NCBI GenBank assembly: GCA_965655095.1
Contig: OZ296650.1
Span: forward strand, 133,858,001 to 133,922,000
DNA length: 64,000 bases
Direction of reading: 5' to 3'
DNA from: Haplodiscus bocki
Lineage: Eukaryota
In this document: positions 520-50,400 of the stretch, one piece after another
How positions within the stretch are numbered: position 1 is the stretch's first letter
Layout of the letters: every line of letters starts with the position of its first letter
Notes under the pieces: generated by a model
The model's database searches: none
Told to the model about the DNA's origin: nothing
Seen by the model: the letters and a program-made list of their open reading frames with translations, nothing else
Program-made: the position numbers and the translations under genes

Positions 520-681
520 GCTGTTATTGAAGCATAAAAAACTCTCCAGTTAACTCTTCCAACTCCGGATTTGGTTACCAAAAACTTTAAACTATTGACA
601 CTGAGTAAAATGAATATGTTATGCACGAAATTTGTATCTACTCACTTGGTTCGGATGTTAAATGCATCAACCGTGTAATCA

Positions 682-2676: not shown

Positions 2677-5600
2677 CTAAAAATTCTGCATGCAATCACA
2701 TTCCAGGGCTGTTTCGATACCTGTAACTTTATACAAATCCATAAGAACATGGCATTCTGACAAGTAATCTGCAAGCGTTAGCATCACATTCGAATATTTG
2801 TGATTAACCATTGCTCTTTGCCAATCCTGTTCGAAAGAGTAACGGCTTCGGGAAACAGCGTTGGAAAACCCCGTCACGTAAGCAACTAAAGCCCAGGGTC
2901 TTCTTTCAACAGGCTTTGTAAATGCGCTCCCATTTCCCGAATTATGCTCCTGCAATCGTCGCCGCAACGTCTTACAGCTTCCAATGTAAAAAAGTTCCCT
3001 GCGTTTAACGCTCACCAACAAATAACAGTAACCAATTGCCGAAAGGGGTACATCAAAAACACGTAAGGGAAAGGGATAAAATGTCTGGATCGCTGAAACA
3101 CCGGAATTACAACTGCCACGAGACGACAAAAAGTTATCTATCAAAGGTACCAAATGGCTATCTTTGCGGCAAAGAAGATTAATTGCATCAAGTGTACGCT
3201 GCTTGTCACCGACAAACGTTATATGGGAAAGATCAGTGACCCGACTAACAACTACATAAAGCTGCTCTTTCAGCCAGTAGGAAAATTTTTTACCACCAAC
3301 AATCTGTGTTGCCAAGCTTGGAACAGTGTCACCCATTATTTTGTGAACCGTTGACGCCACATACATTTTCAAAGGAAACTGAACACGTCTGCAAACGGTA
3401 GAATTGCTATACTTATGGAGAACGCCAATTCTTTTACGAACAACTACAAGTCTCCAGGAATTAACGTCCGGGTTGTTAGATGACACAGACCTTACTCCGG
3501 CTGGTGCAACTCTCACAACAATATGAGGATCATTTTCATCGAACGATTCAACTAAACACAATTGTCCCTGGAACAGTTTCAGCGATGGCAAATTGCAAGT
3601 TAAGCGCAATACACACCCAACATGTATAAACAAAGACTCTGGCTCAAGGCAACTTCGGTTGAGGAACTTGCTGACGGGTGCTGTTGCGGTAACCCAATTC
3701 TGGGTTCCTGTATTTGACATTTCATCCTTGCAATGGAAAGACACACTCTGTATGTTTTGATGTGTTGTCACAAACGATATTCTCTCTTCCACGGCCTCTT
3801 TTTCCGCAACTCGCGTACTGAACACTCTCAAAATATCCAGAGGGACTTCCGTCCACGTGCTTACAAAAATACAGAACTTGTCAATGATCTCACAACACTC
3901 CTTAATACATGCTTCTGTCACAGGATATTCAGACAGCAAATCCAGAAGTCTCTTTCCTTGCTGGTTCTGCATCCTCACATAGTGCTTCAAATACCGAACC
4001 TCGAAATTAGCTAACACCGAGTTGCTCAGCAAAAGGAACGTTCCCGTAGGAGGCGGAAGTTGACGAAAATCACCTGTGCAAATAACAATCTTTCCTCCAA
4101 AAGGAAGATTGTTTTCAGACACGGCTTGCAACACATTGTCCATTGCGGACCAAAGTTCAGCTGAAATCATTGAGACTTCCTCGACAAATAAAACATCCAA
4201 CCTCTCCAAAAAAGTAAATTTTAGAGGATCTCGGGCAAGAGTGTTCAATGCATGCGAAACTAGATGAGTCACCGTTCCATTTTGAACGACAGGGAAAGGG
4301 ATTAAAGCGTTTATGTGTCTTCCGCCGAAAAGTGAAGCTCTCTCCGCAGCGACACTAGTTATGACGCATCTCAATCCCCTAGCTAGAGCCGCGATCACAC
4401 AATGGATCAACACATGGCTCTTTCCTGTACCTGGTGGACCAACTATGAACTGATGTTTAATAAAGGCAGTCGTACAAGAACAATAATTATCGTACAAAGA
4501 ACAAACGTAATCCAAAATATTCTGTTGATCATGCAATGATTCGTCAGTCTGGTTGCGCGCTTTATGTATCTTCTGGCTCCAAGTAAAAGGACGTGCTAAG
4601 GTGGCGTTCATCAATTCTGCATACGTTGGTAAACCAACATAACCCCCATTGGCAATGGCACACAGAAGACTCTCTTTCTGCGCATTTAATTCGTGTGAAA
4701 TATTGCTGTCACTCTGCTGCACAATACTCTGTTCTAAGACGCGCGGTGTTGAGCACGGAAAAACGACCGAATTATTTTGTGCTGCTTGCTGGATGCACAA
4801 ATAGGCACTCGTAACAAATCGATCTAGTAAAGTAGATGATCCTGGATAATAGCGTAATTGTTCAAGCACAAAGCGCCGAACAACATCAATAACTTCGGAA
4901 TCTTCGCATCCCAAATGAGACCTCGCTAAAGAAGCCTCAAAGAACGCAGATTTCATATTCGATTGAGAAAAAATGTTAAGTTCGGTTACGTATTCTCCAA
5001 GAGACAACAGAATGTGGGTCAAAAAATTGGTTGTGTTCCTCGGAACAACGTTCGATAAAACTACTTGAGTTTGACAAACCTTTTTGTCATAAATGAACTT
5101 GTGACTTGAACTGCTCGTTGTACATGCAATGGCTTCATGACATTGCCTGGAGAAACGACGGACCCCACTAGAAAAGTTGCGACAGTAGTTGAAAAAAGCT
5201 TCTTTGTACAAAGCATTAAGGTATATGCAATAGCCGAGGCCATCCACCCAATATGATTTGGTTACATTTCTCTTTAGTAAACTTTCTGGTGTCAACTTTG
5301 AGGGCTTTCGGAAGCGGCAGAACCAAGTAAAATAGTTTTCCACTTTGAGCACAAAAGTTAGTTCAGGGGGTCGTACACCAAAAACTGTTATCTTGTCTGG
5401 AGAAAGAGAACTTTTTTCTGCATCAATTATCAGCAGCTTCTGATTAACCGTGAAGCAACGGTGAGGAGGAAAGTCCTTGCTGTGTCTAATGGAACTCTGG
5501 CGCCCAAAAAGAGGACCCTGATTGCTACTAGAAAGCCTGCATTTCGGTTCAATGACTATTCCAGCCCGTTTCTCTCGCGGGGCAGTGACAACATGAATGA

Positions 5601-17671: not shown

Positions 17672-20600
17672 CTAAAAATTCTGCATGCAATCACATTCCA
17701 GGGCTGTTTCGATACCTGTAACTTTATACAAATCCATAAGAACATGGCATTCTGACAAGTAATCTGCAAGCGTTAGCATCACATTCGAATATTTGTGATT
17801 AACCATTGCTCTTTGCCAATCCTGTTCGAAAGAGTAACGGCTTCGGGAAACAGCGTTGGAAAACCCCGTCACGTAAGCAACTAAAGCCCAGGGTCTTCTT
17901 TCAACAGGCTTTGTAAATGCGCTCCCATTTCCCGAATTATGCTCCTGCAATCGTCGCCGCAACGTCTTACAGCTTCCAATGTAAAAAAGTTCCCTGCGTT
18001 TAACGCTCACCAACAAATAACAGTAACCAATTGCCGAAAGGGGTACATCAAAAACACGTAAGGGAAAGGGATAAAATGTCTGGATCGCTGAAACACCGGA
18101 ATTACAACTGCCACGAGACGACAAAAAGTTATCTATCAAAGGTACCAAATGGCTATCTTTGCGGCAAAGAAGATTAATTGCATCAAGTGTACGCTGCTTG
18201 TCACCGACAAACGTTATATGGGAAAGATCAGTGACCCGACTAACAACTACATAAAGCTGCTCTTTCAGCCAGTAGGAAAATTTTTTACCACCAACAATCT
18301 GTGTTGCCAAGCTTGGAACAGTGTCACCCATTATTTTGTGAACCGTTGACGCCACATACATTTTCAAAGGAAACTGAACACGTCTGCAAACGGTAGAATT
18401 GCTATACTTATGGAGAACGCCAATTCTTTTACGAACAACTACAAGTCTCCAGGAATTAACGTCCGGGTTGTTAGATGACACAGACCTTACTCCGGCTGGT
18501 GCAACTCTCACAACAATATGAGGATCATTTTCATCGAACGATTCAACTAAACACAATTGTCCCTGGAACAGTTTCAGCGATGGCAAATTGCAAGTTAAGC
18601 GCAATACACACCCAACATGTATAAACAAAGACTCTGGCTCAAGGCAACTTCGGTTGAGGAACTTGCTGACGGGTGCTGTTGCGGTAACCCAATTCTGGGT
18701 TCCTGTATTTGACATTTCATCCTTGCAATGGAAAGACACACTCTGTATGTTTTGATGTGTTGTCACAAACGATATTCTCTCTTCCACGGCCTCTTTTTCC
18801 GCAACTCGCGTACTGAACACTCTCAAAATATCCAGAGGGACTTCCGTCCACGTGCTTACAAAAATACAGAACTTGTCAATGATCTCACAACACTCCTTAA
18901 TACATGCTTCTGTCACAGGATATTCAGACAGCAAATCCAGAAGTCTCTTTCCTTGCTGGTTCTGCATCCTCACATAGTGCTTCAAATACCGAACCTCGAA
19001 ATTAGCTAACACCGAGTTGCTCAGCAAAAGGAACGTTCCCGTAGGAGGCGGAAGTTGACGAAAATCACCTGTGCAAATAACAATCTTTCCTCCAAAAGGA
19101 AGATTGTTTTCAGACACGGCTTGCAACACATTGTCCATTGCGGACCAAAGTTCAGCTGAAATCATTGAGACTTCCTCGACAAATAAAACATCCAACCTCT
19201 CCAAAAAAGTAAATTTTAGAGGATCTCGGGCAAGAGTGTTCAATGCATGCGAAACTAGATGAGTCACCGTTCCATTTTGAACGACAGGGAAAGGGATTAA
19301 AGCGTTTATGTGTCTTCCGCCGAAAAGTGAAGCTCTCTCCGCAGCGACACTAGTTATGACGCATCTCAATCCCCTAGCTAGAGCCGCGATCACACAATGG
19401 ATCAACACATGGCTCTTTCCTGTACCTGGTGGACCAACTATGAACTGATGTTTAATAAAGGCAGTCGTACAAGAACAATAATTATCGTACAAAGAACAAA
19501 CGTAATCCAAAATATTCTGTTGATCATGCAATGATTCGTCAGTCTGGTTGCGCGCTTTATGTATCTTCTGGCTCCAAGTAAAAGGACGTGCTAAGGTGGC
19601 GTTCATCAATTCTGCATACGTTGGTAAACCAACATAACCCCCATTGGCAATGGCACACAGAAGACTCTCTTTCTGCGCATTTAATTCGTGTGAAATATTG
19701 CTGTCACTCTGCTGCACAATACTCTGTTCTAAGACGCGCGGTGTTGAGCACGGAAAAACGACCGAATTATTTTGTGCTGCTTGCTGGATGCACAAATAGG
19801 CACTCGTAACAAATCGATCTAGTAAAGTAGATGATCCTGGATAATAGCGTAATTGTTCAAGCACAAAGCGCCGAACAACATCAATAACTTCGGAATCTTC
19901 GCATCCCAAATGAGACCTCGCTAAAGAAGCCTCAAAGAACGCAGATTTCATATTCGATTGAGAAAAAATGTTAAGTTCGGTTACGTATTCTCCAAGAGAC
20001 AACAGAATGTGGGTCAAAAAATTGGTTGTGTTCCTCGGAACAACGTTCGATAAAACTACTTGAGTTTGACAAACCTTTTTGTCATAAATGAACTTGTGAC
20101 TTGAACTGCTCGTTGTACATGCAATGGCTTCATGACATTGCCTGGAGAAACGACGGACCCCACTAGAAAAGTTGCGACAGTAGTTGAAAAAAGCTTCTTT
20201 GTACAAAGCATTAAGGTATATGCAATAGCCGAGGCCATCCACCCAATATGATTTGGTTACATTTCTCTTTAGTAAACTTTCTGGTGTCAACTTTGAGGGC
20301 TTTCGGAAGCGGCAGAACCAAGTAAAATAGTTTTCCACTTTGAGCACAAAAGTTAGTTCAGGGGGTCGTACACCAAAAACTGTTATCTTGTCTGGAGAAA
20401 GAGAACTTTTTTCTGCATCAATTATCAGCAGCTTCTGATTAACCGTGAAGCAACGGTGAGGAGGAAAGTCCTTGCTGTGTCTAATGGAACTCTGGCGCCC
20501 AAAAAGAGGACCCTGATTGCTACTAGAAAGCCTGCATTTCGGTTCAATGACTATTCCAGCCCGTTTCTCTCGCGGGGCAGTGACAACATGAATGAATTGT

Positions 20601-29738: not shown

Positions 29739-30681
29739 TTCTTAAAAAATGCAAAAGGATGTGTTTCAAACGAGGAAGTACACGATAAAAAACACAAGTC
29801 AAGATTTGCAGTCTGATTTCTCTCAAACGGAAAAACGCCCAATGAACAAAGAAAAATTTTTGATGAAAGAAAACTTTAGAAAATCCGTTTTTTTATTAAA
29901 GCCTAGCAACTCTTCAGTCCCGTCTATGGTACACTTTGTCTGGAATCAACTGAATCTGCAGTCATTTATCGGGTGTGTCCTCAAAACAGTTTTCCACTCC
30001 AAGTCAAAAATTGGTCGCATACCGAAAACATATAAATTGAAACACAGATAGTACATTAAACTGAATTTCCTCTGAACTATTTCTATTTCCAAAAACAAAA
30101 CAATTTACAACAGATTCCAGTAAAAAAACCTGCATGCCAAAAGGATATAAACAAAATGCCAAAAAAGCGTTCAGCTTCAAATAACATCATCAAATGTAAA
30201 ATCATAGTTCAACTAAATGAATGCAATATTGCCAATTCATTTTTTACATTTAAAAACCATATGGCAGCACAAATAGTGCAATTAAACAATAACACCAAAT
30301 CATGACAGAAATGACCGCATTACAAATATTCACGCGGTGTTAAAACACCGACGGACTTCCTAATCATCAAGTTATCTTCATGGAGCTCGCGGTAATTGAT
30401 GCCTATGCCGATTCGTGAAACTCACATCTGTTTCTTTTGACCTGCAAGAAACAGATAATCTTGAAATAGTTCGCAGAGGACTTGCTTGTTTTCACGATGA
30501 ATCGTGAAAACAAGCAAGTGCTGTTATTGAAGCATAAAAAACTCTCCAGTTAACTCTTCCAACTCCGGATTTGGTTACCAAAAACTTTAAACTATTGACA
30601 CTGAGTAAAGTGAATATGTTATGCACGAAATTTGTATCTACTCACTTGGTTCGGATGTTAAATGCATCAACCGTGTAATCA

Positions 30682-31335
30682 CTAACGTTCCGGTTTTCTT
30701 TCAAAAATTGTGGCAAAAATATGTTGCTGCTTATCTTCGAAATTGTCAATAAAACAGAAACCAAAAACTAAAACACTAACTTTGTTTCGGAGATTATTGC
30801 TTCTATTGCGGCACCGACGCAAAGTCAAATCCTGCAAACCATTGTTCAACAGTGTTCTGGATAGCATATGATTCTCTAACAAGCTATTCAGGTGCAGATC
30901 GTTACTTTCATCAAGTAAAAGTTTGTACCGTTTTGATAGAATCGATTTCATTTTCAAAAAAATAATTCCTGTTGGACAATTTTCCAAGAGCTCGTTTAAA
31001 TTATGCGCTCCTGATCGTGGTAAGTAGGAAAAAGCCACGACATTGAATTTTCTCAAGTACGCCAGTTTACTGAAAAAAGCCTCAGGACTCATTGCCGGAT
31101 TCTTCTTGCTTGACAAAGAGTTATTGACAGCATCATGCCAAATGATAACCTTTCTTCCATTAGTGTTGCAGGAATTCGATTGAAGAAGATAACAAATGTT
31201 TTTTTCTGGTTGGTAGTTATTTAGCGAAGCACCAGAAATTGCACAAAATTGTGACTTGAAAGGATCAAAGAGGTAAGGTTTCTCCTGAGCTGCCCAATAA
31301 AGGGAAGAGGCCGCCAAAACAAAATATTCAGACAT
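30682..31335 (-). CDS. SGNH-like accessory protein (copy C)
   Basis: One substitution (R>S) relative to copy A. Confidence 0.55.
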   Translation of the reverse strand: MSEYFVLAASSLYWAAQEKPYLFDPFKSQFCAISGASLNNYQPEKNICYLLQSNSCNTNGRKVIIWHDAVNNSLSSKKNPAMSPEAFFSKLAYLRKFNVVAFSYLPRSGAHNLNELLENCPTGIIFLKMKSILSKRYKLLLDESNDLHLNSLLENHMLSRTLLNNGLQDLTLRRCRNRSNNLRNKVSVLVFGFCFIDNFEDKQQHIFATIFERKPER

Positions 31336-32676
31336 AACAACCGGAAACCGAAAGACAATGTATTATGAAAACAAACAAACGAACGAAACATACTTTATAT
31401 TGTTTACTTTGCAATTAGAAAAACCTACTCAAACTCCAGAATCTCCTTCCATTCATGTCATTTGCTTATTAGAACAAAAACGAAGTCAAACAAAAATTCA
31501 CAACGGTCACACAGCTACAGAGTCGTCAAAACGGTCAAAAATCAGAAATGTTCTTTGAGGAAAGGAAATTTTATAAAAAATACAATAGCCACATACCCGA
31601 AGAATGAAAATCTCACTCAAACAACTCGATATGCACGAAATAAGAGCCCCTCTTTAATCGCTGCAAAGAAGTACATAGTGGTGAAACACTTCAATTCACA
31701 AAAGTAACGATAATAAAAAAGCTTCTCATAAAACAAATGATAGAGCGTTTAATGACTTGAAAGAAAAAGTGTTCACAGCTTCCGTAACAAGGAATATGGA
31801 ATGGATTTGAAAGGTGCCGCGCTACAAATGAACTCCGCTGCTATCTCTTTATGTTTCCAGGCCAGTTTGTAGAACATGGGTTGCTGGACAACCAACTCAT
31901 ATACGTTCATCTAACAAACAACATTCTAATTGAGAACTTGCGTCGGCGGTTGCTGAGCAACCAGCAAAACAAAACATGAAAGCTAAATTGCCTCCGTCAG
32001 CTATAAAAAAAATAAATCATTATATGAGTCAGAATTAACATCTAAAACAGCTCACAGTCAGTGATACAATCACAAAACATAAACAGCAATGTCACATTGT
32101 AGAAACCCCGTCACATTCTCTTGCAGTTGACAATTTTTTCAATAAATTTCTGCACTGATTACCGAACAAAAAGTTAAACCCCTATAGCGTCTGAAATATT
32201 GGAAACAATCTCCCAAAAACATCAAAACAGCTCCTTCAGTGTAATTACAGACACATGTCAAAACAAATTATGGCGGAAAAGGATTGTATGATTCTTTCAA
32301 TTACCGTGTGATATAATTGTGTACGTTATTCCATAAAGTATCATAGCATAAAAGTTCGATCACGAATCTAAACAAAGTTACTCAGTGAGTCCAACGAAAA
32401 GGTGATAAAAATGAAAACGACATCCCGTTACAAAATTAATCTTCCAACTATTACAACACATCCTCTTTTTCAAAGGTTGGCTCAAAACCAACAGCAAACA
32501 ATGGCAAAGAATCAAATCAATCAACATGATTGGCTACAAAAATTATTTGCTGAAAAGTTGGTTTCGGACAAACCAATGTTCAGGAATACTTTTGAAATAC
32601 AATCGGTTTTCTCGATGGCAGTTTTACAAAAGTCTAAATCGTTGTAGACAATTACATATGAACAATCAAATAAACA

Positions 32677-35600
32677 CTAAAAATTCTGCATGCAATCACA
32701 TTCCAGGGCTGTTTCGATACCTGTAACTTTATACAAATCCATAAGAACATGGCATTCTGACAAGTAATCTGCAAGCGTTAGCATCACATTCGAATATTTG
32801 TGATTAACCATTGCTCTTTGCCAATCCTGTTCGAAAGAGTAACGGCTTCGGGAAACAGCGTTGGAAAACCCCGTCACGTAAGCAACTAAAGCCCAGGGTC
32901 TTCTTTCAACAGGCTTTGTAAATGCGCTCCCATTTCCCGAATTATGCTCCTGCAATCGTCGCCGCAACGTCTTACAGCTTCCAATGTAAAAAAGTTCCCT
33001 GCGTTTAACGCTCACCAACAAATAACAGTAACCAATTGCCGAAAGGGGTACATCAAAAACACGTAAAGGAAAGGGATAAAATGTCTGGATCGCTGAAACA
33101 CCGGAATTACAACTGCCACGAGACGACAAAAAGTTATCTATCAAAGGTACCAAATGGCTATCTTTGCGGCAAAGAAGATTAATTGCATCAAGTGTACGCT
33201 GCTTGTCACCGACAAACGTTATATGGGAAAGATCAGTGACCCGACTAACAACTACATAAAGCTGCTCTTTCAGCCAGTAGGAAAATTTTTTACCACCAAC
33301 AATCTGTGTTGCCAAGCTTGGAACAGTGTCACCCATTATTTTGTGAACCGTTGACGCCACATACATTTTCAAAGGAAACTGAACACGTCTGCAAACGGTA
33401 GAATTGCTATACTTATGGAGAACGCCAATTCTTTTACGAACAACTACAAGTCTCCAGGAATTAACGTCCGGGTTGTTAGATGACACAGACCTTACTCCGG
33501 CTGGTGCAACTCTCACAACAATATGAGGATCATTTTCATCGAACGATTCAACTAAACACAATTGTCCCTGGAACAGTTTCAGCGATGGCAAATTGCAAGT
33601 TAAGCGCAATACACACCCAACATGTATAAACAAAGACTCTGGCTCAAGGCAACTTCGGTTGAGGAACTTGCTGACGGGTGCTGTTGCGGTAACCCAATTC
33701 TGGGTTCCTGTATTTGACATTTCATCCTTGCAATGGAAAGACACACTCTGTATGTTTTGATGTGTTGTCACAAACGATATTCTCTCTTCCACGGCCTCTT
33801 TTTCCGCAACTCGCGTACTGAACACTCTCAAAATATCCAGAGGGACTTCCGTCCACGTGCTTACAAAAATACAGAACTTGTCAATGATCTCACAACACTC
33901 CTTAATACATGCTTCTGTCACAGGATATTCAGACAGCAAATCCAGAAGTCTCTTTCCTTGCTGGTTCTGCATCCTCACATAGTGCTTCAAATACCGAACC
34001 TCGAAATTAGCTAACACCGAGTTGCTCAGCAAAAGGAACGTTCCCGTAGGAGGCGGAAGTTGACGAAAATCACCTGTGCAAATAACAATCTTTCCTCCAA
34101 AAGGAAGATTGTTTTCAGACACGGCTTGCAACACATTGTCCATTGCGGACCAAAGTTCAGCTGAAATCATTGAGACTTCCTCGACAAATAAAACATCCAA
34201 CCTCTCCAAAAAAGTAAATTTTAGAGGATCTCGGGCAAGAGTGTTCAATGCATGCGAAACTAGATGAGTCACCGTTCCATTTTGAACGACAGGGAAAGGG
34301 ATTAAAGCGTTTATGTGTCTTCCGCCGAAAAGTGAAGCTCTCTCCGCAGCGACACTAGTTATGACGCATCTCAATCCCCTAGCTAGAGCCGCGATCACAC
34401 AATGGATCAACACATGGCTCTTTCCTGTACCTGGTGGACCAACTATGAACTGATGTTTAATAAAGGCAGTCGTACAAGAACAATAATTATCGTACAAAGA
34501 ACAAACGTAATCCAAAATATTCTGTTGATCATGCAATGATTCGTCAGTCTGGTTGCGCGCTTTATGTATCTTCTGGCTCCAAGTAAAAGGACGTGCTAAG
34601 GTGGCGTTCATCAATTCTGCATACGTTGGTAAACCACCATAACCCCCATTGGCAATGGCACACAGAAGACTCTCTTTCTGCGCATTTAATTCGTGTGAAA
34701 TATTGCTGTCACTCTGCTGCACAATACTCTGTTCTAAGACGCGCGGTGTTGAGCACGGAAAAACGACCGAATTATTTTGTGCTGCTTGCTGGATGCACAA
34801 ATAGGCACTCGTAACAAATCGATCTAGTAAAGTAGATGATCCTGGATAATAGCGTAATTGTTCAAGCACAAAGCGCCGAACAACATCAATAACTTCGGAA
34901 TCTTCGCATCCCAAATGAGACCTCGCTAAAGAAGCCTCAAAGAACGCAGATTTCATATTCGATTGAGAAAAAATGTCAAGTTCGGTTACGTATTCTCCAA
35001 GAGACAACAGAATGTGGGTCAAAAAATTGGTTGTGTTCCTCGGAACAACGTTCGATAAAACTACTTGAGTTTGACAAACCTTTTTGTCATAAATGAACTT
35101 GTGACTTGAACTGCTCGTTGTACATGCAATGGCTTCATGACATTGCCTGGAGAAACGACGGACCCCACTAGAAAAGTTGCGACAGTAGTTGAAAAAAGCT
35201 TCTTTGTACAAAGCATTAAGGTATATGCAATAGCCGAGGCCATCCACCCAATATGATTTGGTTACATTTCTCTTTAGTAAACTTTCTGGTGTCAACTTTG
35301 AGGGCTTTCGGAAGCGGCAGAACCAAGTAAAATAGTTTTCCACTTTGAGCACAAAAGTTAGTTCAGGGGGTCGTACACCAAAAACTGTTATCTTGTCTGG
35401 AGAAAGAGAACTTTTTTCTGCATCAATTATCAGCAGCTTCTGATTAACCGTGAAGCAACGGTGAGGAGGAAAGTCCTTGCTGTGTCTAATGGAACTCTGG
35501 CGCCCAAAAAGAGGACCCTGATTGCTACTAGAAAGCCTGCATTTCGGTTCAATGACTATTCCAGCCCGTTTCTCTCGCGGGGCAGTGACAACATGAATGA

Positions 35601-38600
35601 ATTGTATATTGGTCACCACGTAAGGAAATCGCAATGACCACCACACGGATTCCGTTAAACTCAAAATGCGAGAGTTCAAACACTTTTTCTTTGGCTTTTC
35701 CTCCTTGCTCATATTGGTCAAGTATACCCCAGCGATTTTGTTGTTCACTTGTTGATCAACATGGAAGTCATACAAATCTGTTGCACTTGACGTAGAAATA
35801 GAAACTTCGGCGCGTTCCTCCACGTCTGCAACATATTTTGACAGATAACGGCTACTCATGTAAATGTCGCAAATTTGTAGATTGGTGCTAGATCGGACGA
35901 GGGCAAAAATTTTGGCGTTTGTTGGAGAAGTGTGCGTGTTACTTTCTGTTGGATAATGATGCTTGCCACCACAAAGGCGCTGATCAATGGTGACAGAACA
36001 ATCAAAGTCACTCGACTCAGCTAATCCGATGTTCTTCAAAACTGCTATCGTTTCCTCAGACAGTTCTTTGTGAATACATTTGTAGGTAAAATTAGCAGAA
36101 GGAGGGTATTTGGGCACGCGGCACGTTTTTCTTTTCAATTTGTCAGTTTTTTTCTGACAACGAAATTTAGCTTTAAAACAGCTGTGTGATTGGTAACGGT
36201 TGAACAGATCTCGTAACTCGTTCAACTCATCCAAACTATAATTGTGCGAACCAACTTCAGTCAATAAATTCCCCAGAAACGTTGTTGCCGAGCAACAAAT
36301 TCTAGACCTTACTGCTTCACTAAAGCAATCTTCTGCCGTCCAAATCAAAGCATGTACATGAGGGAACCCACAAGCTTCATCTTGAAACTCATACCGATAC
36401 CAAATCTTTTTAACCTTTCCCAATGGCTGCTCGGGTGACGTTTCAATGTACTTCATGACAAGACGAGAAGCTCGTTCCCACGCTCTCAACATGGTGACCA
36501 TTTCAGATTGAATCGCTGATTTTCGGACCTCCTCTTTACAGACGTCTTTCGGAAACTTTGCGTCCAACGCACTAAAAATCTTCCTCAAGCCAGGATGCGT
36601 TGACTGCCCACAAGTGTAAGTGAAAAAATATGTAGCTGGTCGTTCTTTCAAAGCTGCTCCCAATTCATTGACATTCTTCCGAGAATCGCATTGATCAAAA
36701 AAAATTGCCCCTTCTCGCATGGCATGTACATTTTTTCGTTGCCGAGCGGCTTCACTCCAACCTCTGTTCAATACTATTCTGGTGTCATTGACACGCAGCT
36801 GTAGGTTAAATATTGTGTCAAATACGTATTGGACGTAACGAGGATCCGTTGACGTCAACAGAGACGAATCTTTCAAGCGCGTTTGTAAATGTTGTTCTAA
36901 GCTAGCGAAGCCGAGCAATTCGTTTTGTTTGTGATCATTATACAAAGGAGACGGTATTGCACCCGAATAACTGCCGTCTGTATTTTGGTGCCAAAAGATG
37001 GACGGAAACAACATGGCTTCCGGCTGAAGCAAAGGGACAGAATTAGGGGGCGACGTTGCAGTGATATTCTCCAGAAATCTCTTATGTCTAGCTGCAACAT
37101 ACAACGGAGACCCTTTACTCCTTTTCAGTAAACCGCATTGACCATTCAATAAAACATGTAGTGGGAGCTGAAAATCAGTGCTGTCTATTCGGAAATCACG
37201 TTCCAAAACAACAGTTGAATCTCCAGCAGCAGTTGTAACAGGCAGCGAAACATGCGATCCCTCAGAATCTTCCTCTAAAAGGCCAGGGTTGGTAACAAAT
37301 TCCGAGGACGCGACAGTGTTGGTAGGCGATGTGGACCGATTCTCTGAATCGACAGAAACACGGCTATAGCTACAATCATCTAACTGACTTGAGCCGCACG
37401 CTGAGTTTTTTGTGGACTCACCAAAGATCCTTTTTTTACCATCAAAAACAAAGTGCTTTTCCTGACTTTCATCTTCAGAATGCATCCTGCAAACACTTGC
37501 CAAACAACCAGACACTGGACAACGTAAAAAAGAACTTCTACCACATGAGCATTTGAAACCACTTGAAGGAAAATCACGGGTGAGTAACAGAGAATGCTTT
37601 TTACAAAAGAATTTTCCTTGACCTGCCAGTGTTTCAAAATATTTCGACCGCAACTCACTAATATCGGCAAAGGTCTGTCGATAGTAAACACAGATATTCC
37701 AATAGTCATTAATAAAATGATCAACCGCTCTATCACAAGGCAGCCTCACCTGTTCAGGAAAAATACTTTTGCTTTTATACACCCAAAAACTTTGAAAGAC
37801 ACCACCATGCCTCAAAAGAATGTTATTACGAGTCGCTAAACCTTCAGTAGCAATAAATTTCAACTCGAAAACGGACTGAGCAGTTTGGAAGTTCAGAGGA
37901 GCTTTGAATTTAGAACGCAAAGTATTTACTCCCGCGTATGAAAAAAGTATGACATTTACACCTTCAAATTCTTGAGCTTCCAAAAAATGCCAAATATCTT
38001 GACGGCTTGCCACGTTTTCATGGATGACATCATCACAAAATTGTGACACACCGAAACTGAGACAACGAGATGGACTTTCCGGAAATCTTGTAAACAACTT
38101 CGACAATCCATCACTCATAGACGCATCCACAGTTTTCCTTGTGCAGCGACGGAACCTTGGAAAAATTACAGGGTCCAAAAATTGCAGCAAAGGAAAAATC
38201 GCATTATCAACACCAGCTGAATCAGATATGGATCGACACAGTTGAGGAGAGATGCAAAATAAAGTTTGCAACAACGACAAAAAGTGAGTCTTGCAGCTCA
38301 AAATTTTTGGAGGAGAGGAACCAAACGAATTCGGAGGCTGAGCGAACGTCACAGACTTGAATTTTGCGCATAAGCGTTGTCCATCAGTCAATCCAGGAGA
38401 ACTGAATAAACGATACGTATCCGTTATAGACACACTTGTTGATGCGGAAAGAGAAGCAGCCGACTGTTCAATGTTCGGTTTACTTTGAATGCCTTGTCGG
38501 ATTTCATCAGTTGTTTCGCCAGAAGACACTAAGCTATTCAAAAAATATTGAATATCGCTTCGGTAAAAACTACATTGAGATTCCGCCTTCACTAACAGAT

Positions 38601-39924
38601 CCGAAGTAATATCCCAACGGCGTTGAGAGCTCAAGCGAATGCTACTAATGCCTGAATAATTACCGACAGCTTTCAGCAACTGGAAAGTGTGACTAGCGTA
38701 ATTCGCTTTGGCATTCTTCAAAATACGCAAATTTGGAGCAACAAATGCTAATCTGTCGTTGGTAGGAACACTGAGACGTCCCAGAGACGGGTGTGCAGGC
38801 GGGTGAAGATACTGCAGGTGAGACCCATTGTTATGCTGCACACAAGTTCCGATAACAAGGCCATATGCCCCATTAACACTGACAAAGCCGGAAACATCAA
38901 ACGCATCCAAAACTTTCATTGGTTTCAACCAATCGTCTCTTGCACCTCGCAAATGGTACAAGTAATCAGAGCTGAACGATGTGAATGAAGGCAAAATCCC
39001 ATTTACAAGGTGGTTGAAACCGATTCGACCTGTTTCTTCAACAAATGTGAAACAACCGAAGGGACATCTACAATTTGGATAACATTCATTATCTAAGGCT
39101 TCCTCCAAATCAGTGAAATTACCCGAATTTATTTTGTCCAGAAAAACTTCCTTCCGTTTTGTTATATCAACTAGAACAGATGGATCACCCATAGAAACAG
39201 CAGGATGCAGATGTTGACACATAGCCCAACTGTCGCGTATTTCGGGAGGTAAAAAAGAAACAAATTTTTTCATAGTACAATCTCGAATGCTGAGATCCTT
39301 CAGTAACGAATGAATCACGGAAGGCCAAGCGTACCGCCAACAATTTCCGCCATTATTGTAATTGAAACAACTTTGGCAGACCAGACAGGTAGCAGTAGGT
39401 CGCAAACCAAATCTCCTTCGTTTGATTGCTGTTTTTTCAAGAGTTTGCCATTGCAAAGGATAAGCAGGAGTTGAAATTCGACAACATTTACCGCACATTT
39501 CTCTGTTTTGTGCTTTGTCGGCTGAAAAAGTGGACGTCAAAACACAATTGTCACTCGAGGCATCCTCATTACGACAGGCGTTATCTTTCTTCATAATCAT
39601 TGTGGCTGTGCCATTGTGTGCGGATTGCGTGGATTGAATCTCCTGAGGCAGGGCATTGAAGCAAACACCTGGGCTCAACGGGTCACACTTAGAACCATTT
39701 TCTTCACATTCAATTGTCGCTAGGCTTAAACAACTGTTGCTGGGCAACAAAAGGTCGTTGTGCATACCGCCCAATCCAACAGAGGGTGATGTGAGGCCTT
39801 CATCGCACAAATGAGGCAAAACTTTAAATTCAGAACAGGCACTACCTTTTGGATCAGAAGTGTTCGCATGAAATGACATTGCATTGTGATGCCGTATCTG
39901 GGAATGAACTCTGGACGCAACCAT
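32677..39924 (-). CDS. Helitron-like RepHel transposase with C-terminal SLX1-type GIY-YIG nuclease (2415 aa; OTU lost by frameshift)
   Basis: Uninterrupted ORF with Rep motif 1 PATYFFTYTC, motif 2 EFQ..PHVHALIW, motif 3 YLSKY, PIF1 helicase motifs and GIY-YIG. Confidence 0.92.
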   Translation of the reverse strand: MVASRVHSQIRHHNAMSFHANTSDPKGSACSEFKVLPHLCDEGLTSPSVGLGGMHNDLLLPSNSCLSLATIECEENGSKCDPLSPGVCFNALPQEIQSTQSAHNGTATMIMKKDNACRNEDASSDNCVLTSTFSADKAQNREMCGKCCRISTPAYPLQWQTLEKTAIKRRRFGLRPTATCLVCQSCFNYNNGGNCWRYAWPSVIHSLLKDLSIRDCTMKKFVSFLPPEIRDSWAMCQHLHPAVSMGDPSVLVDITKRKEVFLDKINSGNFTDLEEALDNECYPNCRCPFGCFTFVEETGRIGFNHLVNGILPSFTSFSSDYLYHLRGARDDWLKPMKVLDAFDVSGFVSVNGAYGLVIGTCVQHNNGSHLQYLHPPAHPSLGRLSVPTNDRLAFVAPNLRILKNAKANYASHTFQLLKAVGNYSGISSIRLSSQRRWDITSDLLVKAESQCSFYRSDIQYFLNSLVSSGETTDEIRQGIQSKPNIEQSAASLSASTSVSITDTYRLFSSPGLTDGQRLCAKFKSVTFAQPPNSFGSSPPKILSCKTHFLSLLQTLFCISPQLCRSISDSAGVDNAIFPLLQFLDPVIFPRFRRCTRKTVDASMSDGLSKLFTRFPESPSRCLSFGVSQFCDDVIHENVASRQDIWHFLEAQEFEGVNVILFSYAGVNTLRSKFKAPLNFQTAQSVFELKFIATEGLATRNNILLRHGGVFQSFWVYKSKSIFPEQVRLPCDRAVDHFINDYWNICVYYRQTFADISELRSKYFETLAGQGKFFCKKHSLLLTRDFPSSGFKCSCGRSSFLRCPVSGCLASVCRMHSEDESQEKHFVFDGKKRIFGESTKNSACGSSQLDDCSYSRVSVDSENRSTSPTNTVASSEFVTNPGLLEEDSEGSHVSLPVTTAAGDSTVVLERDFRIDSTDFQLPLHVLLNGQCGLLKRSKGSPLYVAARHKRFLENITATSPPNSVPLLQPEAMLFPSIFWHQNTDGSYSGAIPSPLYNDHKQNELLGFASLEQHLQTRLKDSSLLTSTDPRYVQYVFDTIFNLQLRVNDTRIVLNRGWSEAARQRKNVHAMREGAIFFDQCDSRKNVNELGAALKERPATYFFTYTCGQSTHPGLRKIFSALDAKFPKDVCKEEVRKSAIQSEMVTMLRAWERASRLVMKYIETSPEQPLGKVKKIWYRYEFQDEACGFPHVHALIWTAEDCFSEAVRSRICCSATTFLGNLLTEVGSHNYSLDELNELRDLFNRYQSHSCFKAKFRCQKKTDKLKRKTCRVPKYPPSANFTYKCIHKELSEETIAVLKNIGLAESSDFDCSVTIDQRLCGGKHHYPTESNTHTSPTNAKIFALVRSSTNLQICDIYMSSRYLSKYVADVEERAEVSISTSSATDLYDFHVDQQVNNKIAGVYLTNMSKEEKPKKKCLNSRILSLTESVWWSLRFPYVVTNIQFIHVVTAPREKRAGIVIEPKCRLSSSNQGPLFGRQSSIRHSKDFPPHRCFTVNQKLLIIDAEKSSLSPDKITVFGVRPPELTFVLKVENYFTWFCRFRKPSKLTPESLLKRNVTKSYWVDGLGYCIYLNALYKEAFFNYCRNFSSGVRRFSRQCHEAIACTTSSSSHKFIYDKKVCQTQVVLSNVVPRNTTNFLTHILLSLGEYVTELDIFSQSNMKSAFFEASLARSHLGCEDSEVIDVVRRFVLEQLRYYPGSSTLLDRFVTSAYLCIQQAAQNNSVVFPCSTPRVLEQSIVQQSDSNISHELNAQKESLLCAIANGGYGGLPTYAELMNATLARPFTWSQKIHKARNQTDESLHDQQNILDYVCSLYDNYCSCTTAFIKHQFIVGPPGTGKSHVLIHCVIAALARGLRCVITSVAAERASLFGGRHINALIPFPVVQNGTVTHLVSHALNTLARDPLKFTFLERLDVLFVEEVSMISAELWSAMDNVLQAVSENNLPFGGKIVICTGDFRQLPPPTGTFLLLSNSVLANFEVRYLKHYVRMQNQQGKRLLDLLSEYPVTEACIKECCEIIDKFCIFVSTWTEVPLDILRVFSTRVAEKEAVEERISFVTTHQNIQSVSFHCKDEMSNTGTQNWVTATAPVSKFLNRSCLEPESLFIHVGCVLRLTCNLPSLKLFQGQLCLVESFDENDPHIVVRVAPAGVRSVSSNNPDVNSWRLVVVRKRIGVLHKYSNSTVCRRVQFPLKMYVASTVHKIMGDTVPSLATQIVGGKKFSYWLKEQLYVVVSRVTDLSHITFVGDKQRTLDAINLLCRKDSHLVPLIDNFLSSRGSCNSGVSAIQTFYPFPLRVFDVPLSAIGYCYLLVSVKRRELFYIGSCKTLRRRLQEHNSGNGSAFTKPVERRPWALVAYVTGFSNAVSRSRYSFEQDWQRAMVNHKYSNVMLTLADYLSECHVLMDLYKVTGIETALECDCMQNF

Positions 39925-41002
39925 GAGGCAAACTTTGCTGTGAATTTGGATTTTCTGCCGACAACACTGCTACCGTTTCAAAATGGTTACCTGTATGAGT
40001 ATGTACGAGGAAGACAGATGGAACGTCCATTGAAGCACGATCTCCGGCATAGCTATAAACTATCCACAATTTTGTCATGCAATGGTAAACGTAAACATCA
40101 GCCACCGCAATTTGGGCGAAAGCATAGATCTCTACACAAGTGCCATACACACCATTCGATCTCATTCCGGAACGATTCAAATATTCGTTCACGTTTGAAG
40201 CTGTCTCTACCACAACATTTCCATCAATGGTTGTGTAAATTTCCAGAAAATGCGGAGCAATATCTACGGAGGGTAAAGCCAAACAAATACGCTGGCGTAG
40301 TTGTGAATGATACCAATATTGTGACCCAATTGACACCGCTAAAGCAGAGAACAAACAATTACCGTCACCTGGAACAGGATGAGTTTGTGATGGATGCAAA
40401 CTGTTCAAAGATTTGGCACCCAACAAGTGTGTGTTCAATGGTTTTGCCACAAACGGTATTCCAAACACAATGCAAATTCTCGTCAAATTAGCGGTTGTGC
40501 ATGAAAAAGCTGTTGAATTCGGCACGTTCGAGAAAAGACTCATGGTATTGAATGGCGCAGAAAACAGCGACCGATCAAAATAGTCTTCACCAACTGAGGC
40601 TTTTACCATGGATGATTGGAAACAGGAGCAGTCTTTGCTGCCATAAAAACGCCCACATGTTACGCATTTCCTGGGCTCTCTGCACAATTTCTTTTTTTTT
40701 GGCGGGCCAGGGTTGGTTTCTATACCACTTCTCAACAGAAACAAAAGTAACATTCTGCGAGTCATCGAAACCTCATCAGAATTGCCGATCCTCATAAACT
40801 GCAAGTGATCCTGAAGACACAAAGAGACACAAAATTCCCCAACGGTGACGTCTGAGCTGAAGACTTCTCCGACATTGTTCACATAAACAATTCCATCTTT
40901 TTCCAAAACTGTCCATAAAGAAGACCAAATCATCAACAAAGTTAAACAAAGTGAGTAAACCATTTTCTGAAAATGAGATTCGTCAAAACTCTGTACACCC
41001 AT
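39854..41002 (-). CDS. Leader-2A-OTU protease fragment, copy C, separated from RepHel by the 11-bp deletion
   Basis: 384-aa ORF containing GIETNPGP and the OTU Cys/His boxes. Confidence 0.75.
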   Translation of the reverse strand: MGVQSFDESHFQKMVYSLCLTLLMIWSSLWTVLEKDGIVYVNNVGEVFSSDVTVGEFCVSLCLQDHLQFMRIGNSDEVSMTRRMLLLFLLRSGIETNPGPPKKKKLCREPRKCVTCGRFYGSKDCSCFQSSMVKASVGEDYFDRSLFSAPFNTMSLFSNVPNSTAFSCTTANLTRICIVFGIPFVAKPLNTHLLGAKSLNSLHPSQTHPVPGDGNCLFSALAVSIGSQYWYHSQLRQRICLALPSVDIAPHFLEIYTTIDGNVVVETASNVNEYLNRSGMRSNGVYGTCVEIYAFAQIAVADVYVYHCMTKLWIVYSYAGDRASMDVPSVFLVHTHTGNHFETVAVLSAENPNSQQSLPHGCVQSSFPDTASQCNVISCEHF

Positions 41003-43496
41003 CAACACTCAGTGGCGGCGCCTACATCTATAAAACTCAGTCAATGAAGGCTTTGAAACAGCCACATGCGTTACAGAAAAATCTTCTATCGAAAGGAACT
41101 TCAAAAACAGTTGGATCATTTGAATTCAAAAGATTCACTGCATTGAATATTTGAAGTTCACCAGTTGAATTTTTAACTGTCTCTTCAGTGACTTTTCGTT
41201 TTTAATGCCGAAAATACCATGCTTGTGTGATTTCAGCAAGACTTGCAGTACTTGAAAAAATGATTAGTTAAATACGATTCAAATTCAAAACAATGAGGAC
41301 TGTTAGCGTTGTACACCAAACAAAACAAACTGCTGAGTAAGTATACTCTCAAAATATTCCTTGTCGAATGCCAAAGTGGTGCTTGTTGAACGCCAACCAT
41401 AAACTGACCAAAAAAATTAACAATTACATAACACACTCCAACTTACAAGGCATGAAAGAGGTTCAACTCTCGTAATGCAAACGTGGAAAGTTCCAACACT
41501 GCTGATTTCTACAAAAAAACATAACAAGGAAAACGAAAGAACCTCATAGATGCTCAGAACAATAATATAACAAACTTAAAATTTCTGGCAAACAATTGAA
41601 ATGGAATGCAAAACTTATTGCCAAAACTTTTATTTTTATTTTTCAAAATGAATGACACGTAATGGAAGCATCTATTGCATTCTACAACCAACAAAGAGCC
41701 CTGATCCAAGATATAATTTATGTATGCCATTATACTTGATGAGAAAAAATGTAGGATTATAAAATATAACTTACATAAGTAACGCCTAACTAGATTAAAT
41801 TTGAGTTTAGCTGAAAAAACTGTGTCATATGAGACAAAATACTGTCAAAGTGTCAACGACCACTTGTGTAGAAGCTGCGAAGCATTGTTAGCCGCATTTT
41901 ACGCGCAAAACGATCAATTCCAGCGTTTTTAGGCGCTTTTTACGCGCAAAGCGATCCTTTCCCGGGAAAATTTTTTTTTTCTCACAAAAATATCCGTCAT
42001 TTCCGTCATTTTTTTCCCGCATATCCGTCATTTTTTTTCGGCATTTCGATCGAAAATTTCTGGTTAACCGAAATCAATTGCCGGTTCAGTTTTGGCATCC
42101 TTAGCGAAGGCTAGCATACGAGAAAAAGTTGGTTTTGGCGATCAAAAATGACGGAATGACGCATTTTTTGCAAAAATTTACAAATTCATCAGCGCCTATC
42201 TCCCGAACAAAAAAAGCTGGGCCAAAAATTTTTGGCATGCAAATTGTTCAAATCATTTGTGCCTCACACACAAAATTTGGGCCAATTGTATCGGGTAGAT
42301 GTGGAACTAAAGCGATGAGAATTCAAAATCGGGACAAAAAACACGATCATTCCGTCATAACTCATCACGTTGTGAATGGAAAAAGTTTTTTCCCTCCTCC
42401 CCTTTCTCACCTCGCCATTTGAGGACCGCATGCAAATTATGAATAAATTCTATCGGGTAGGACCCGAGATCGGCTTCCCAGACCCCTAGTGCACCTAGAT
42501 GAAAATTTATCGACTAATATTTAACCTCGGCAACGGGACCCTACCCGGCCTCGGATTCTAAAAAGGTTACATCCCTGACCACCCAGGTCCAAAAATAACA
42601 ATTAAATTTTGAGAAGAAACATAAAACTCAAATCAGCTGTTTATGAAAAATTTCAAAGCTCCTACACGTTTTCCCATTTATAAATGTTCCTAAAAGATCG
42701 ATATGTCTACATAGCAAAACGAGGCTCACACACTGCAAAATTCGCTCAACCTTCTTTACTGTCTTATTTTAAACGAGAATTTCATCTCCGTTTAATCACT
42801 GCGACATTTTGAACAAAGACAACATAGACTTCTGTGAGCGTACCACTGACTTGGGACATCGAAATGACTTCACGGCTCATGCAAACTATAAATCGTTGCT
42901 ATTCACAGTGAATCTCTTTTAGAACTTTGAACACTTTCAAAGTATTTTCATTTGTTCCTCCAACTTTATGAGTAAACTATTTGAACACGAGGCAAATCGC
43001 GAACCAAAAGTTCCTATCTAATTTGAGTACGTTAAATTTATCAATATGTTGACAAATTGGAGCAAATATATCTTCTAATACTAATGATAGCATCATTATT
43101 GAGAGGCCACTGACTTAAGAAAATTACTTCCAAAGTGCTTTACTAACATTGAAAAGCGTAGTGAAAATTTCATAAAACCTTCAACGTGGATTATTGAAGT
43201 AAATCGAACTACTTTACAGAGAATAATGCAGGGTACTGCCATAACGAAACAAGATTTATTTAGGTGAGAGAAAAACAGTTGTTTGTTTCATTGTAAAGTT
43301 TGTGGAAAGAAGGTTTAAATGTAAAAGAGACCATGTAAAGTTGAGTTGCTAAGGCAACTGCGTTGAATTCATCGACGGCACTACAGAATAACAATAGATG
43401 TGAAACTTTCAAAAAGGAACATCCTTCTATATGTTCATTCTCATTCGACTTCAAAAAGCACATATCCGTAGGGGATTTTGAAAAATCCATAACAAA

Positions 43497-47427: not shown

Positions 47428-50400
47428 CTAAAAATTCTGCATGCAATCACATTCCAGGGCTGTTTCGATACCTGTAACTTTATACAAATCCATAAGAACA
47501 TGGCATTCTGACAAGTAATCTGCAAGCGTTAGCATCACATTCGAATATTTGTGATTAACCATTGCTCTTTGCCAATCCTGTTCGAAAGAGTAACGGCTTC
47601 GGGAAACAGCGTTTGAAAACCCCGTCACGTAAGCAACTAAAGCCCAGGGTCTTCTTTCAACAGGCTTTGTAAATGCGCTCCCATTTCCCGAATTATGCTC
47701 CTGCAATCGTCGCCGCAACGTCTTACAGCTTCCAATGTAAAAAAGTTCCCTGCGTTTAACGCTCACCAACAAATAACAGTAACCAATTGCCGAAAGGGGT
47801 ACATCAAAAACACGTAAAGGAAAGGGATAAAATGTCTGGATCGCTGAAACACCGGAATTACAACTGCCACGAGACGACAAAAAGTTATCTATCAAAGGTA
47901 CCAAATGGCTATCTTTGCGGCAAAGAAGATTAATTGCATCAAGTGTACGCTGCTTGTCACCGACAAACGTTATATGGGAAAGATCAGTGACCCGACTAAC
48001 AACTACATAAAGCTGCTCTTTCAGCCAGTAGGAAAATTTTTTACCACCAACAATCTGTGTTGCCAAGCTTGGAACAGTGTCACCCATTATTTTGTGAACC
48101 GTTGACGCCACATACATTTTCAAAGGAAACTGAACACGTCTGCAAACGGTAGAATTGCTATACTTATGGAGAACGCCAATTCTTTTACGAACAACTACAA
48201 GTCTCCAGGAATTAACGTCCGGGTTGTTAGATGACACAGACCTTACTCCGGCTGGTGCAACTCTCACAACAATATGAGGATCATTTTCATCGAACGATTC
48301 AACTAAACACAATTGTCCCTGGAACAGTTTCAGCGATGGCAAATTGCAAGTTAAGCGCAATACACACCCAACATGTATAAACAAAGACTCTGGCTCAAGG
48401 CAACTTCGGTTGAGGAACTTGCTGACGGGTGCTGTTGCGGTAACCCAATTCTGGGTTCCTGTATTTGACATTTCATCCTTGCAATGGAAAGACACACTCT
48501 GTATGTTTTGATGTGTTGTCACAAACGATATTCTCTCTTCCACGGCCTCTTTTTCCGCAACTCGCGTACTGAACACTCTCAAAATATCCAGAGGGACTTC
48601 CGTCCACGTGCTTACAAAAATACAGAACTTGTCAATGATCTCACAACACTCCTTAATACATGCTTCTGTCACAGGATATTCAGACAGCAAATCCAGAAGT
48701 CTCTTTCCTTGCTGGTTCTGCATCCTCACATAGTGCTTCAAATACCGAACCTCGAAATTAGCTAACACCGAGTTGCTCAGCAAAAGGAACGTTCCCGTAG
48801 GAGGCGGAAGTTGACGAAAATCACCTGTGCAAATAACAATCTTTCCTCCAAAAGGAAGATTGTTTTCAGACACGGCTTGCAACACATTGTCCATTGCGGA
48901 CCAAAGTTCAGCTGAAATCATTGAGACTTCCTCGACAAATAAAACATCCAACCTCTCCAAAAAAGTAAATTTTAGAGGATCTCGGGCAAGAGTGTTCAAT
49001 GCATGCGAAACTAGATGAGTCACCGTTCCATTTTGAACGACAGGGAAAGGGATTAAAGCGTTTATGTGTCTTCCGCCGAAAAGTGAAGCTCTCTCCGCAG
49101 CGACACTAGTTATGACGCATCTCAATCCCCTAGCTAGAGCCGCGATCACACAATGGATCAACACATGGCTCTTTCCTGTACCTGGTGGACCAACTATGAA
49201 CTGATGTTTAATAAAGGCAGTCGTACAAGAACAATAATTATCGTACAAAGAACAAACGTAATCCAAAATATTCTGTTGATCATGCAATGATTCGTCAGTC
49301 TGGTTGCGCGCTTTATGTATCTTCTGGCTCCAAGTAAAAGGACGTGCTAAGGTGGCGTTCATCAATTCTGCATACGTTGGTAAACCAACATAACCCCCAT
49401 TGGCAATGGCACACAGAAGACTCTCTTTCTGCGCATTTAATTCGTGTGAAATATTGCTGTCACTCTGCTGCACAATACTCTGTTCTAAGACGCGCGGTGT
49501 TGAGCACGGAAAAACGACCGAATTATTTTGTGCTGCTTGCTGGATGCACAAATAGGCACTCGTAACAAATCGATCTAGTAAAGTAGATGATCCTGGATAA
49601 TAGCGTAATTGTTCAAGCACAAAGCGCCGAACAACATCAATAACTTCGGAATCTTCGCATCCCAAATGAGACCTCGCTAAAGAAGCCTCAAAGAACGCAG
49701 ATTTCATATTCGATTGAGAAAAAATGTCAAGTTCGGTTACGTATTCTCCAAGAGACAACAGAATGTGGGTCAAAAAATTGGTTGTGTTCCTCGGAACAAC
49801 GTTCGATAAAACTACTTGAGTTTGACAAACCTTTTTGTCATAAATGAACTTGTGACTTGAACTGCTCGTTGTACATGCAATGGCTTCATGACATTGCCTG
49901 GAGAAACGACGGACCCCACTAGAAAAGTTGCGACAGTAGTTGAAAAAAGCTTCTTTGTACAAAGCATTAAGGTATATGCAATAGCCGAGGCCATCCACCC
50001 AATATGATTTGGTTACATTTCTCTTTAGTAAACTTTCTGGTGTCAACTTTGAGGGCTTTCGGAAGCGGCAGAACCAAGTAAAATAGTTTTCCACTTTGAG
50101 CACAAAAGTTAGTTCAGGGGGTCGTACACCAAAAACTGTTATCTTGTCTGGAGAAAGAGAACTTTTTTCTGCATCAATTATCAGCAGCTTCTGATTAACC
50201 GTGAAGCAACGGTGAGGAGGAAAGTCCTTGCTGTGTCTAATGGAACTCTGGCGCCCAAAAAGAGGACCCTGATTGCTACTAGAAAGCCTGCATTTCGGTT
50301 CAATGACTATTCCAGCCCGTTTCTCTCGCGGGGCAGTGACAACATGAATGAATTGTATATTGGTCACCACGTAAGGAAATCGCAATGACCACCACACGGA

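Follow-up and report, generated by a model that had tools for sequence, protein, structure and literature searches.

We describe a Helitron-like element from Haplodiscus bocki whose transposase carries, at its C-terminus, a GIY-YIG endonuclease of the SLX1 lineage. The element lies in a window of 64,000 nt (the whole stretch of DNA that was analysed; GenBank assembly GCA_965655095.1, contig OZ296650.1, positions 133,858,001 to 133,922,000), where each unit of about 15 kb contains one very long open reading frame (ORF) region. The copy studied here spans positions 32677-39924 on the minus strand and encodes 2415 amino acids (aa). Its identity and architecture are almost certainly those of an (OTU)-unassigned region-HUH Rep-PIF1 helicase-GIY-YIG protein with an SLX1-lineage nuclease. 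Elements of this kind are widespread, and the fusion is conserved and under selection in a large lineage while being essentially undescribed; for the function of the nuclease we propose a role by analogy with characterised enzymes. The original prediction, made from the sequence of the window alone, was of an SLX1-type endonuclease fused behind a PIF1 helicase, and the peptide quoted in its support is the translation of positions 32730-33040 (minus strand) within this ORF.

A Rep, a helicase and a nuclease in one frame

Pfam recognised three domains in the 2415-aa protein: Helitron_like_N at residues 1095-1194 (32.7 bits), PIF1 at residues 1823-1958 (50.1 bits) and GIY-YIG (PF01541) at residues 2298-2371 (nt 32812-33033). 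The nuclease is thus C-terminal to the helicase in a single frame, as had been predicted. Its match to the GIY-YIG profile, on which the prediction had been staked, exceeds the curated cut-off of 22.6 bits, at 37.8 bits when the whole protein is scanned and at 43.0 bits when only the last 147 aa are. The HxH and RYxxxY motifs of the Rep, as well as Walker A/B and the later motifs of the helicase, are kept in at least 90% of 41 full-length relatives. In comparisons with known structures, the helicase region matched Pif1 helicases and, weakly, the Helraiser helicase (1.2e-7), and a family Rep profile aligned to Helraiser (7lcc) through three collinear Rep motifs, again weakly (E 0.014). With an HUH Rep bearing two catalytic tyrosines and a PIF1-type helicase in the same protein, the element classifies as Helitron-like.

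The nuclease belongs to the SLX1 lineage

Comparisons of sequence, profile and fold agree with the proposed SLX1 type and not with a homing or UvrC type. When the last 147 aa were searched with phmmer against all PDB chains, five SLX1 sequences came out on top (E-values 2e-10 to 7e-7), followed by bacterial UPF0213 (2.6e-4) and UvrC (1.3). A profile of 40 family members (alignment A1) recovered SLX1 at 1e-17 to 2.5e-12, UPF0213 at 1e-8 and 1e-6, T4 EndoII at 0.11 and UvrC at 1.2. The same alignment served for an AlphaFold2 (AF2) model of the 165-aa C-terminal segment, which has a mean predicted local distance difference test score (pLDDT) of 85, rising above 90 over segment residues 41-165, and is predicted to adopt the GIY-YIG fold, a three-stranded sheet with helices on its flanks, in beta-beta-alpha-beta-alpha-alpha order. 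The best 11 Foldseek matches to this model were all Slx1 or At-HIGLE (E 2e-6 to 5e-5), with UPF0213 (0.055), UvrC (0.6) and I-TevI (0.9) below them. Using VIA-align, model residues 45-165 superposed on Slx1 chains with Z-scores of 10.8-12.8 (root-mean-square deviation 2.2-3.1 Å over 101-117 residues), compared with 5.2 for I-TevI, 4.6 for UvrC and 4.0 for UPF0213; the helical extension past the core also superposes on SLX1 and At-HIGLE. Two further searches were less informative: an NCBIfam scan of the domain gave nothing relevant, and an ESM Atlas feature search gave generic GIY-YIG clusters only, mostly from phage.

The retention of the catalytic Arg and Glu, also part of the original prediction, is borne out. 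In the phmmer alignment, Y2301, Y2313, R2323, H2327 and E2365 pair with Y14, Y26, R36, H40 and E79 of Cg-Slx1, and all five residues are nearly invariant in the family, each retained by about 90% or more of the 40 relatives in A1. Glu79 of Cg-Slx1 binds the metal, its replacement by Gln (E79Q) abolishes activity, and Arg36 belongs to the active site (PMC4407285). The Slx1 lineage is recognised by its lack of a conserved C-terminal Asn (motif E) (Dunin-Horkawicz 2006, PMC1564403), and in A1 no column past the Glu exceeds 25% Asn, in common with SLX1 and At-HIGLE. Homing, UvrC and Penelope types were rejected on the ranking of the matches and the missing Asn motif.

The domain differs from SLX1 itself in two respects. 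First, neither a RING finger nor SLX1_C was matched by Pfam in the whole protein or in its last 147 aa; the 50 residues past the catalytic Glu are predicted to be helical and hold 3 Cys and 2 His in the window copy, with no Cys or His among the nearly invariant columns of A1. There is therefore no evident interface for the SLX4-CCD, a RING-less state shared with At-HIGLE, an SLX1-lineage enzyme that is active without SLX4 (PMC9071465). Second, the domain forms the C-terminal end of a 2415-aa transposase, whereas in SLX1 it is N-terminal, in a repair protein of about 300 aa. A host SLX1 orthologue is excluded because the RING finger is absent, and a host SLX1 gene was further ruled out by the location inside a 2415-aa ORF in a 15-kb repeat. 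These results establish the domain as an SLX1-lineage nuclease that lacks the RING finger and keeps all of its catalytic residues, and not as an SLX1 orthologue.

The fusion is conserved and selected

Searching 5.8 billion proteins with the Rep-helicase (RepHel) part (residues 1050-2250) gave 51 relatives at 24-58% identity, mostly 2.2-2.8 thousand aa in length; NCBI or UniRef was among the sources for none of them. PF01541 appears in the precomputed Pfam lists of most of the 51, and the automatic JGI names of some read ‘predicted GIY-YIG superfamily endonuclease’. A hidden Markov model of the family C-termini found the domain in 43 of 52 proteins, at 3-32 residues from the C-terminus in all but two. 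In each of the nine proteins that lack it the sequence stops no later than window residue 2208, within the helicase or ahead of it; these are truncated ORFs, not nuclease-less architectures. Absence of the domain from homologous elements had been named beforehand as grounds for abandoning the prediction; we found the nuclease in 43 of the 43 relatives that reach the helicase end.

An exhaustive HMMER search with the domain alone against 1.84 billion cluster representatives returned 788 matches at E ≤1e-3 and 165 at E ≤1e-10. The best 150 of the 788 include 145 new sequences, for which the sequence upstream matches RepHel in 78, the remaining ones being 65 short C-terminal fragments and 2 sequences of another kind. 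An SLX1-like architecture (N-terminal GIY-YIG in a protein of about 300 aa) was seen in none of these best 150. A word-index search for the domain by itself, among targets of 80-257 aa, came back blank, which says little, and a viral-contig scan with the helicase-nuclease protein was also blank.

Constraint on the nuclease was estimated from a pair of sister elements in another assembly (P0002/L001 and P0003/L003), whose proteins are 80% identical. The ratio of nonsynonymous to synonymous substitution rates (dN/dS) was 0.09-0.10 for GIY-YIG, the lowest of all protein regions compared, 0.145 for the helicase, 0.225 for the Rep and 0.34 for the N-terminal third. Across the helicase end, the nuclease and the stop codon, contigs of two independent coral-metagenome studies share about 94-95% identity with the window; they show substitutions and no indels in the coding part, and indels only downstream of the stop. 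Six substitutions are listed in the Pfam core, four of them synonymous and the other two K>R and T>R in a variable loop; only the best-supported differences of these contigs are listed, so that this evidence is partial.

Helitron-like elements often capture host gene fragments. HELIANO describes the GIY-YIG domain of the moss element HelenSM92 as ‘captured and transposed’ (PMC11417382). The domain could in the same way be a piece captured from a host SLX1-like gene and play no part in transposition, an explanation that we find barely credible given its occurrence in all 43 relatives with a complete helicase, down to 24% RepHel identity, the near invariance of its catalytic residues, its low dN/dS and the lack of SLX1-like architectures among its nearest 150 sequences. 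Conservation and dN/dS rule out a recent capture. The passenger explanation is thus largely refuted, and a capture, if there was one, would be ancient and since selected. Throughout a deep lineage, selection has kept the nuclease as a constant part of the protein.

Possible roles of the nuclease

With its single active site a GIY-YIG domain nicks one strand, and HUH nucleases, including Rep, cut single-stranded DNA only. The best overall explanation of our observations, and in our view a likely one, is that the domain is the C-terminal SLX1-lineage nuclease module of a Helitron-like transposase, and that it may serve as a helicase-tethered nickase. The nuclease would be a metal-dependent enzyme with a single active site, tethered by a flexible linker of about 45 aa to a 5′→3′ Pif1 helicase. 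The helicase may carry it to the fork, flap or hairpin junctions that the helicase itself makes, where the nuclease would cut duplex or branched DNA, which the HUH Rep, limited to single strands, cannot do. Such a cut could open donor or target DNA for the Rep and helicase, or it could take off a flap or branch remaining after strand transfer. The nuclease would then be the functional counterpart of the AP (apurinic/apyrimidinic) endonuclease found at the same position in Helentrons. The role suggested with the original prediction, that the domain might nick the target or resolve branched intermediates, accords with the known behaviour of SLX1-lineage enzymes. Characterised Slx1 prefers Holliday junctions, followed by 5′ flaps, splayed arms and 3′ flaps (PMC4407285), and by analogy a specific structure-directed nicking role is conceivable here, although we would put it at somewhat less than an even chance.

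The nuclease may instead be a target-site endonuclease in the manner of Penelope or of the AP endonucleases (APE) of Helentrons and long interspersed elements (LINEs), nicking an ordinary duplex target, perhaps with some sequence preference, to start integration. It does sit C-terminally, as the endonuclease of Helentrons does (HELIANO, PMC11417382), GIY-YIG has this role in Penelope-like elements (PMC1564403), and a duplex nickase would be useful since the HUH Rep needs single-stranded DNA. However, characterised SLX1 enzymes leave plain, nicked or gapped duplex uncut, as they do single strands (PMC4407285), the domain is followed by no extra DNA-recognition module, only by a helical tail of about 50 aa, and it is far closer to SLX1 than to the homing-type enzymes compared. 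We consider target-site nicking rather unlikely, though it is the main rival.

Several observations count against a helicase-tethered nickase of SLX1 character. The window itself is a tandem array and, because it is, any concatemer-resolving activity is at least not always effective. None of the RNA runs searched for the sequence had a match. In addition, Arg72 of Cg-Slx1, a positioning residue for the scissile phosphate, is Ala here, and Arg38/Gln39 are Gln/Glu; because these residues are not conserved, substrate handling may differ from that of SLX1. The same loss of the DNA-contact residues R38, Q39 and R72 would fit a fold kept as a DNA-junction-binding or protein-interaction module with its catalysis unused. 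However, a dead domain would not be expected to retain all five catalytic residues, the metal-binding Glu among them, in such diverse relatives, and we regard this reading as very improbable.

Relation to known systems

It has been reported, by Poulter in 2003 and by Thomas and Pritham in 2015, that the endonuclease of Helentrons is C-terminal. Helentrons (HLE2) resemble the element described here in their rolling-circle RepHel, in the extra endonuclease after the helicase, in an OTU-like protease upstream and in accessory genes after the polyprotein; their endonuclease is an AP endonuclease, and they often carry OTU and RPA-like genes (PMC11417382). Unlike them, the present element has a GIY-YIG nuclease of SLX1 lineage in place of Exo_endo_phos, and HLE2-type termini were not found. 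Pfam matched Exo_endo_phos neither in the 2415-aa protein nor, to judge from their precomputed lists, in any of the 51 relatives. A Helentron in the strict sense calls for an AP endonuclease after the helicase, and by this mark the element is not one.

A precedent is HelenSM92 (Sphagnum magellanicum, HLE2), likened here by description only, in which a GIY-YIG domain lies beside RepHel (PMC11417382). It is a moss element given one sentence as having a ‘captured’ domain, without subfamily assignment, conservation or selection analysis. In the literature searched for Helitron, Helentron, RepHel or rolling-circle together with GIY-YIG or SLX1, that HELIANO sentence was the only prior report.

Penelope-like retroelements are likewise mobile elements in which a replicative enzyme carries a C-terminal GIY-YIG nuclease. 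The present element differs in being a DNA rolling-circle element and not a retroelement, and in having a nuclease of the Slx1 lineage; the Penelope endonuclease clusters with homing endonucleases in the homing endonuclease (HEase)/UvrC supercluster (PMC1564403). Pfam found no reverse transcriptase domain in the 2415-aa protein, homing-type structures rank far below SLX1, and the published classification sets Penelope apart; the domain is probably not a Penelope-type endonuclease. Two other proteins can be set beside it by description. Plant MSH1 has an Slx1-like domain appended C-terminally and is, like the present domain, a RING-less case of the lineage, but it is a host mismatch-repair homologue, and Tetrahymena Tlr8Rp is a mobile-element protein with a superfamily 1 (SF1) helicase followed by a C-terminal GIY-YIG, in which the nuclease is classed as I-TevI-like and no Rep domain was recognised (PMC1564403). 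The selfish GIY-YIGs of homing endonucleases and restriction enzymes derive from the UvrC side of the superfamily (Dunin-Horkawicz 2006, PMC1564403), and an SLX1-lineage nuclease would therefore be a novel type of recruit for mobile elements. In Helitron annotation tools and in screens based on Pfam, GIY-YIG is taken for a stray capture.

An HUH Rep and a helicase are thought to be all that a rolling-circle transposon needs, and what the additional endonuclease does in Helentrons has, to our knowledge, not been explained. Finding a different nuclease fold at the same position, under stronger constraint than the Rep, argues that a second nuclease cutting duplex or junction DNA is really required. 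A parallel is the split between APE and GIY-YIG among retroelements without long terminal repeats (LINEs versus Penelope). The domain is small and foldable with known catalytic residues, and is suited to direct test. More speculatively, and with considerable doubt, RepHel-GIY-YIG elements might constitute a major branch of eukaryotic rolling-circle transposons in their own right, old and widespread, alongside canonical Helitrons and the Helentrons that bear APE. An SLX1-lineage nuclease would be obligatory in that branch and coupled to the helicase, and its members might be the first selfish elements found to draw on the Slx1 side of the GIY-YIG superfamily and not on the UvrC/homing side.

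Array, element ends and accessory genes

The window is free of N and holds a head-to-tail array of at least four units of about 15 kb, all on the minus strand and 99.66-99.85% identical (Table 1). The unit nearest the array 5′ end (minus strand) is missing 232 bp at its junction with the next unit, and the array 3′ end lies beyond the window. The last 165 aa are identical across all four tandem copies. Copies 1 and 2 (2677-9924 and 17672-26014) are broken, their polyprotein being split into a 1790-aa ORF and an upstream ORF (612 and 977 aa, respectively), with intact GIY-YIG ends.

Table 1. Coordinates of the array, the polyprotein domains of the studied copy and related features
Feature	Position	Strand	Basis or detail
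Array units	about 1-12587, 12595-27592, 27600-42586, 42583-57340	minus	within window 1-57340
Whole 2415-aa ORF (Rep, helicase, GIY-YIG and about 1000 aa of unassigned N-terminal region)	32677..39924	minus	translation, Pfam
SLX1-lineage GIY-YIG nuclease and helical extension	32680..33042	minus	residues 2295-2415; Pfam PF01541, PDB, AF2 model, Foldseek, VIA-align
Catalytic codons	Y2301 33022-33024; Y2313 32986-32988; R2323 32956-32958; H2327 32944-32946; E2365 32830-32832	minus	codons verified
Linker, about 45 aa, conserved PFP...P motif, predicted flexible	33043..33174	minus	residues 2251-2294; pLDDT 49-64
PIF1-type SF1 helicase domain	33175..34458	minus	about residues 1823-2250; Pfam PIF1, PDB matches
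Helitron-type HUH Rep nuclease region, HxH and RYxxxY motifs	35485..36807	minus	about residues 1040-1480; Pfam Helitron_like_N
Upstream overlapping ORF, weak OTU protease match	39854..41008	minus	Pfam OTU 21.5 bits, below 23.3 cut-off
Same GIY-YIG domain, tandem copy 1	2680..3042	minus	identical 165-aa C-terminus
Same GIY-YIG domain, tandem copy 2	17675..18037	minus	identical 165-aa C-terminus
Same GIY-YIG domain, tandem copy 4	47431..47793	minus	identical 165-aa C-terminus
Accessory ORF homologues in related elements	L001 15423-15914, 18218-19174; L003 591-1547, 18751-19245; L002 12713-13417		sequence identity

HLE1 elements begin with 5′ TC and end in a hairpin and CTRR 3′, with an AT target, and HLE2 elements have short terminal inverted repeats and a TT target. 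At the ends of the present unit we found no HLE2-type short inverted repeats with a TT target, no exact inverted repeats of 8 nt or more between the two ends, and nothing convincing in the way of Helitron-type TC/CTRR ends or a 3′ hairpin-CTRR. The unit junction reads, on the minus strand, ...GCCTCCA followed directly by CTGGGTGGTCAGGG... The 7 nt outside the array 5′ end (GCCTCCA, minus strand; 11 of 14 nt) are the same as the last bases of each unit; the repeat lies at 57341-57354, and the corresponding unit junctions are near 27593-27606 and 12588-12601. The outside GCCTCCA is either a remnant of another unit end or a target resembling the 3′ end of the element.

Within the polyprotein, P43 and G48 at the linker are nearly invariant in A1. 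Residues 1-1000, upstream of the Rep (36925-39924, minus strand), are without a Pfam match, and within this N-terminal region of about 1000 aa residues 200-500 and 900-1000 form blocks conserved across the family. In copies 3 and 4 the OTU ORF and the 2415-aa ORF lie in different frames and share 71 nt at the start of the latter (39854-41008 versus 32677-39924, and 54605-55438 versus 47428-54675). A database twin, P0001, is a continuous 2647-aa protein with OTU in frame, 100% identical over the searched residues 1050-2415, and OTU (PF02338) is annotated in the relatives P0008, P0018, P0031 and P0033. The overlap in copies 3 and 4 is due either to a frameshift mutation or to programmed frameshifting. 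Ahead of the OTU region, a 2A-like ‘...IETNPGP’ skip motif followed by a basic stretch is seen at 25690-26008 (minus strand), at the N-terminus of ORF 23081-26014, which belongs to the copy with its N-terminal part in frame.

Two accessory ORFs lie downstream of the polyprotein on the minus strand, at 28746-29738 (330 aa) and 30682-31335 (217 aa). A Pfam scan of the two gave no match, and the predicted structure of the 330-aa protein, from a 4-sequence alignment, has a pLDDT of 33. The accessory ORFs that follow the polyprotein keep the same order in the related elements L001, L002 and L003: the 330-aa ORF has a counterpart in all three at 27-43% identity, and the 217-aa ORF in L001 and L003 at 32-34%. 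In L003 a homologue of the 330-aa ORF also occurs upstream of the polyprotein, which hints at a tandem arrangement there too.

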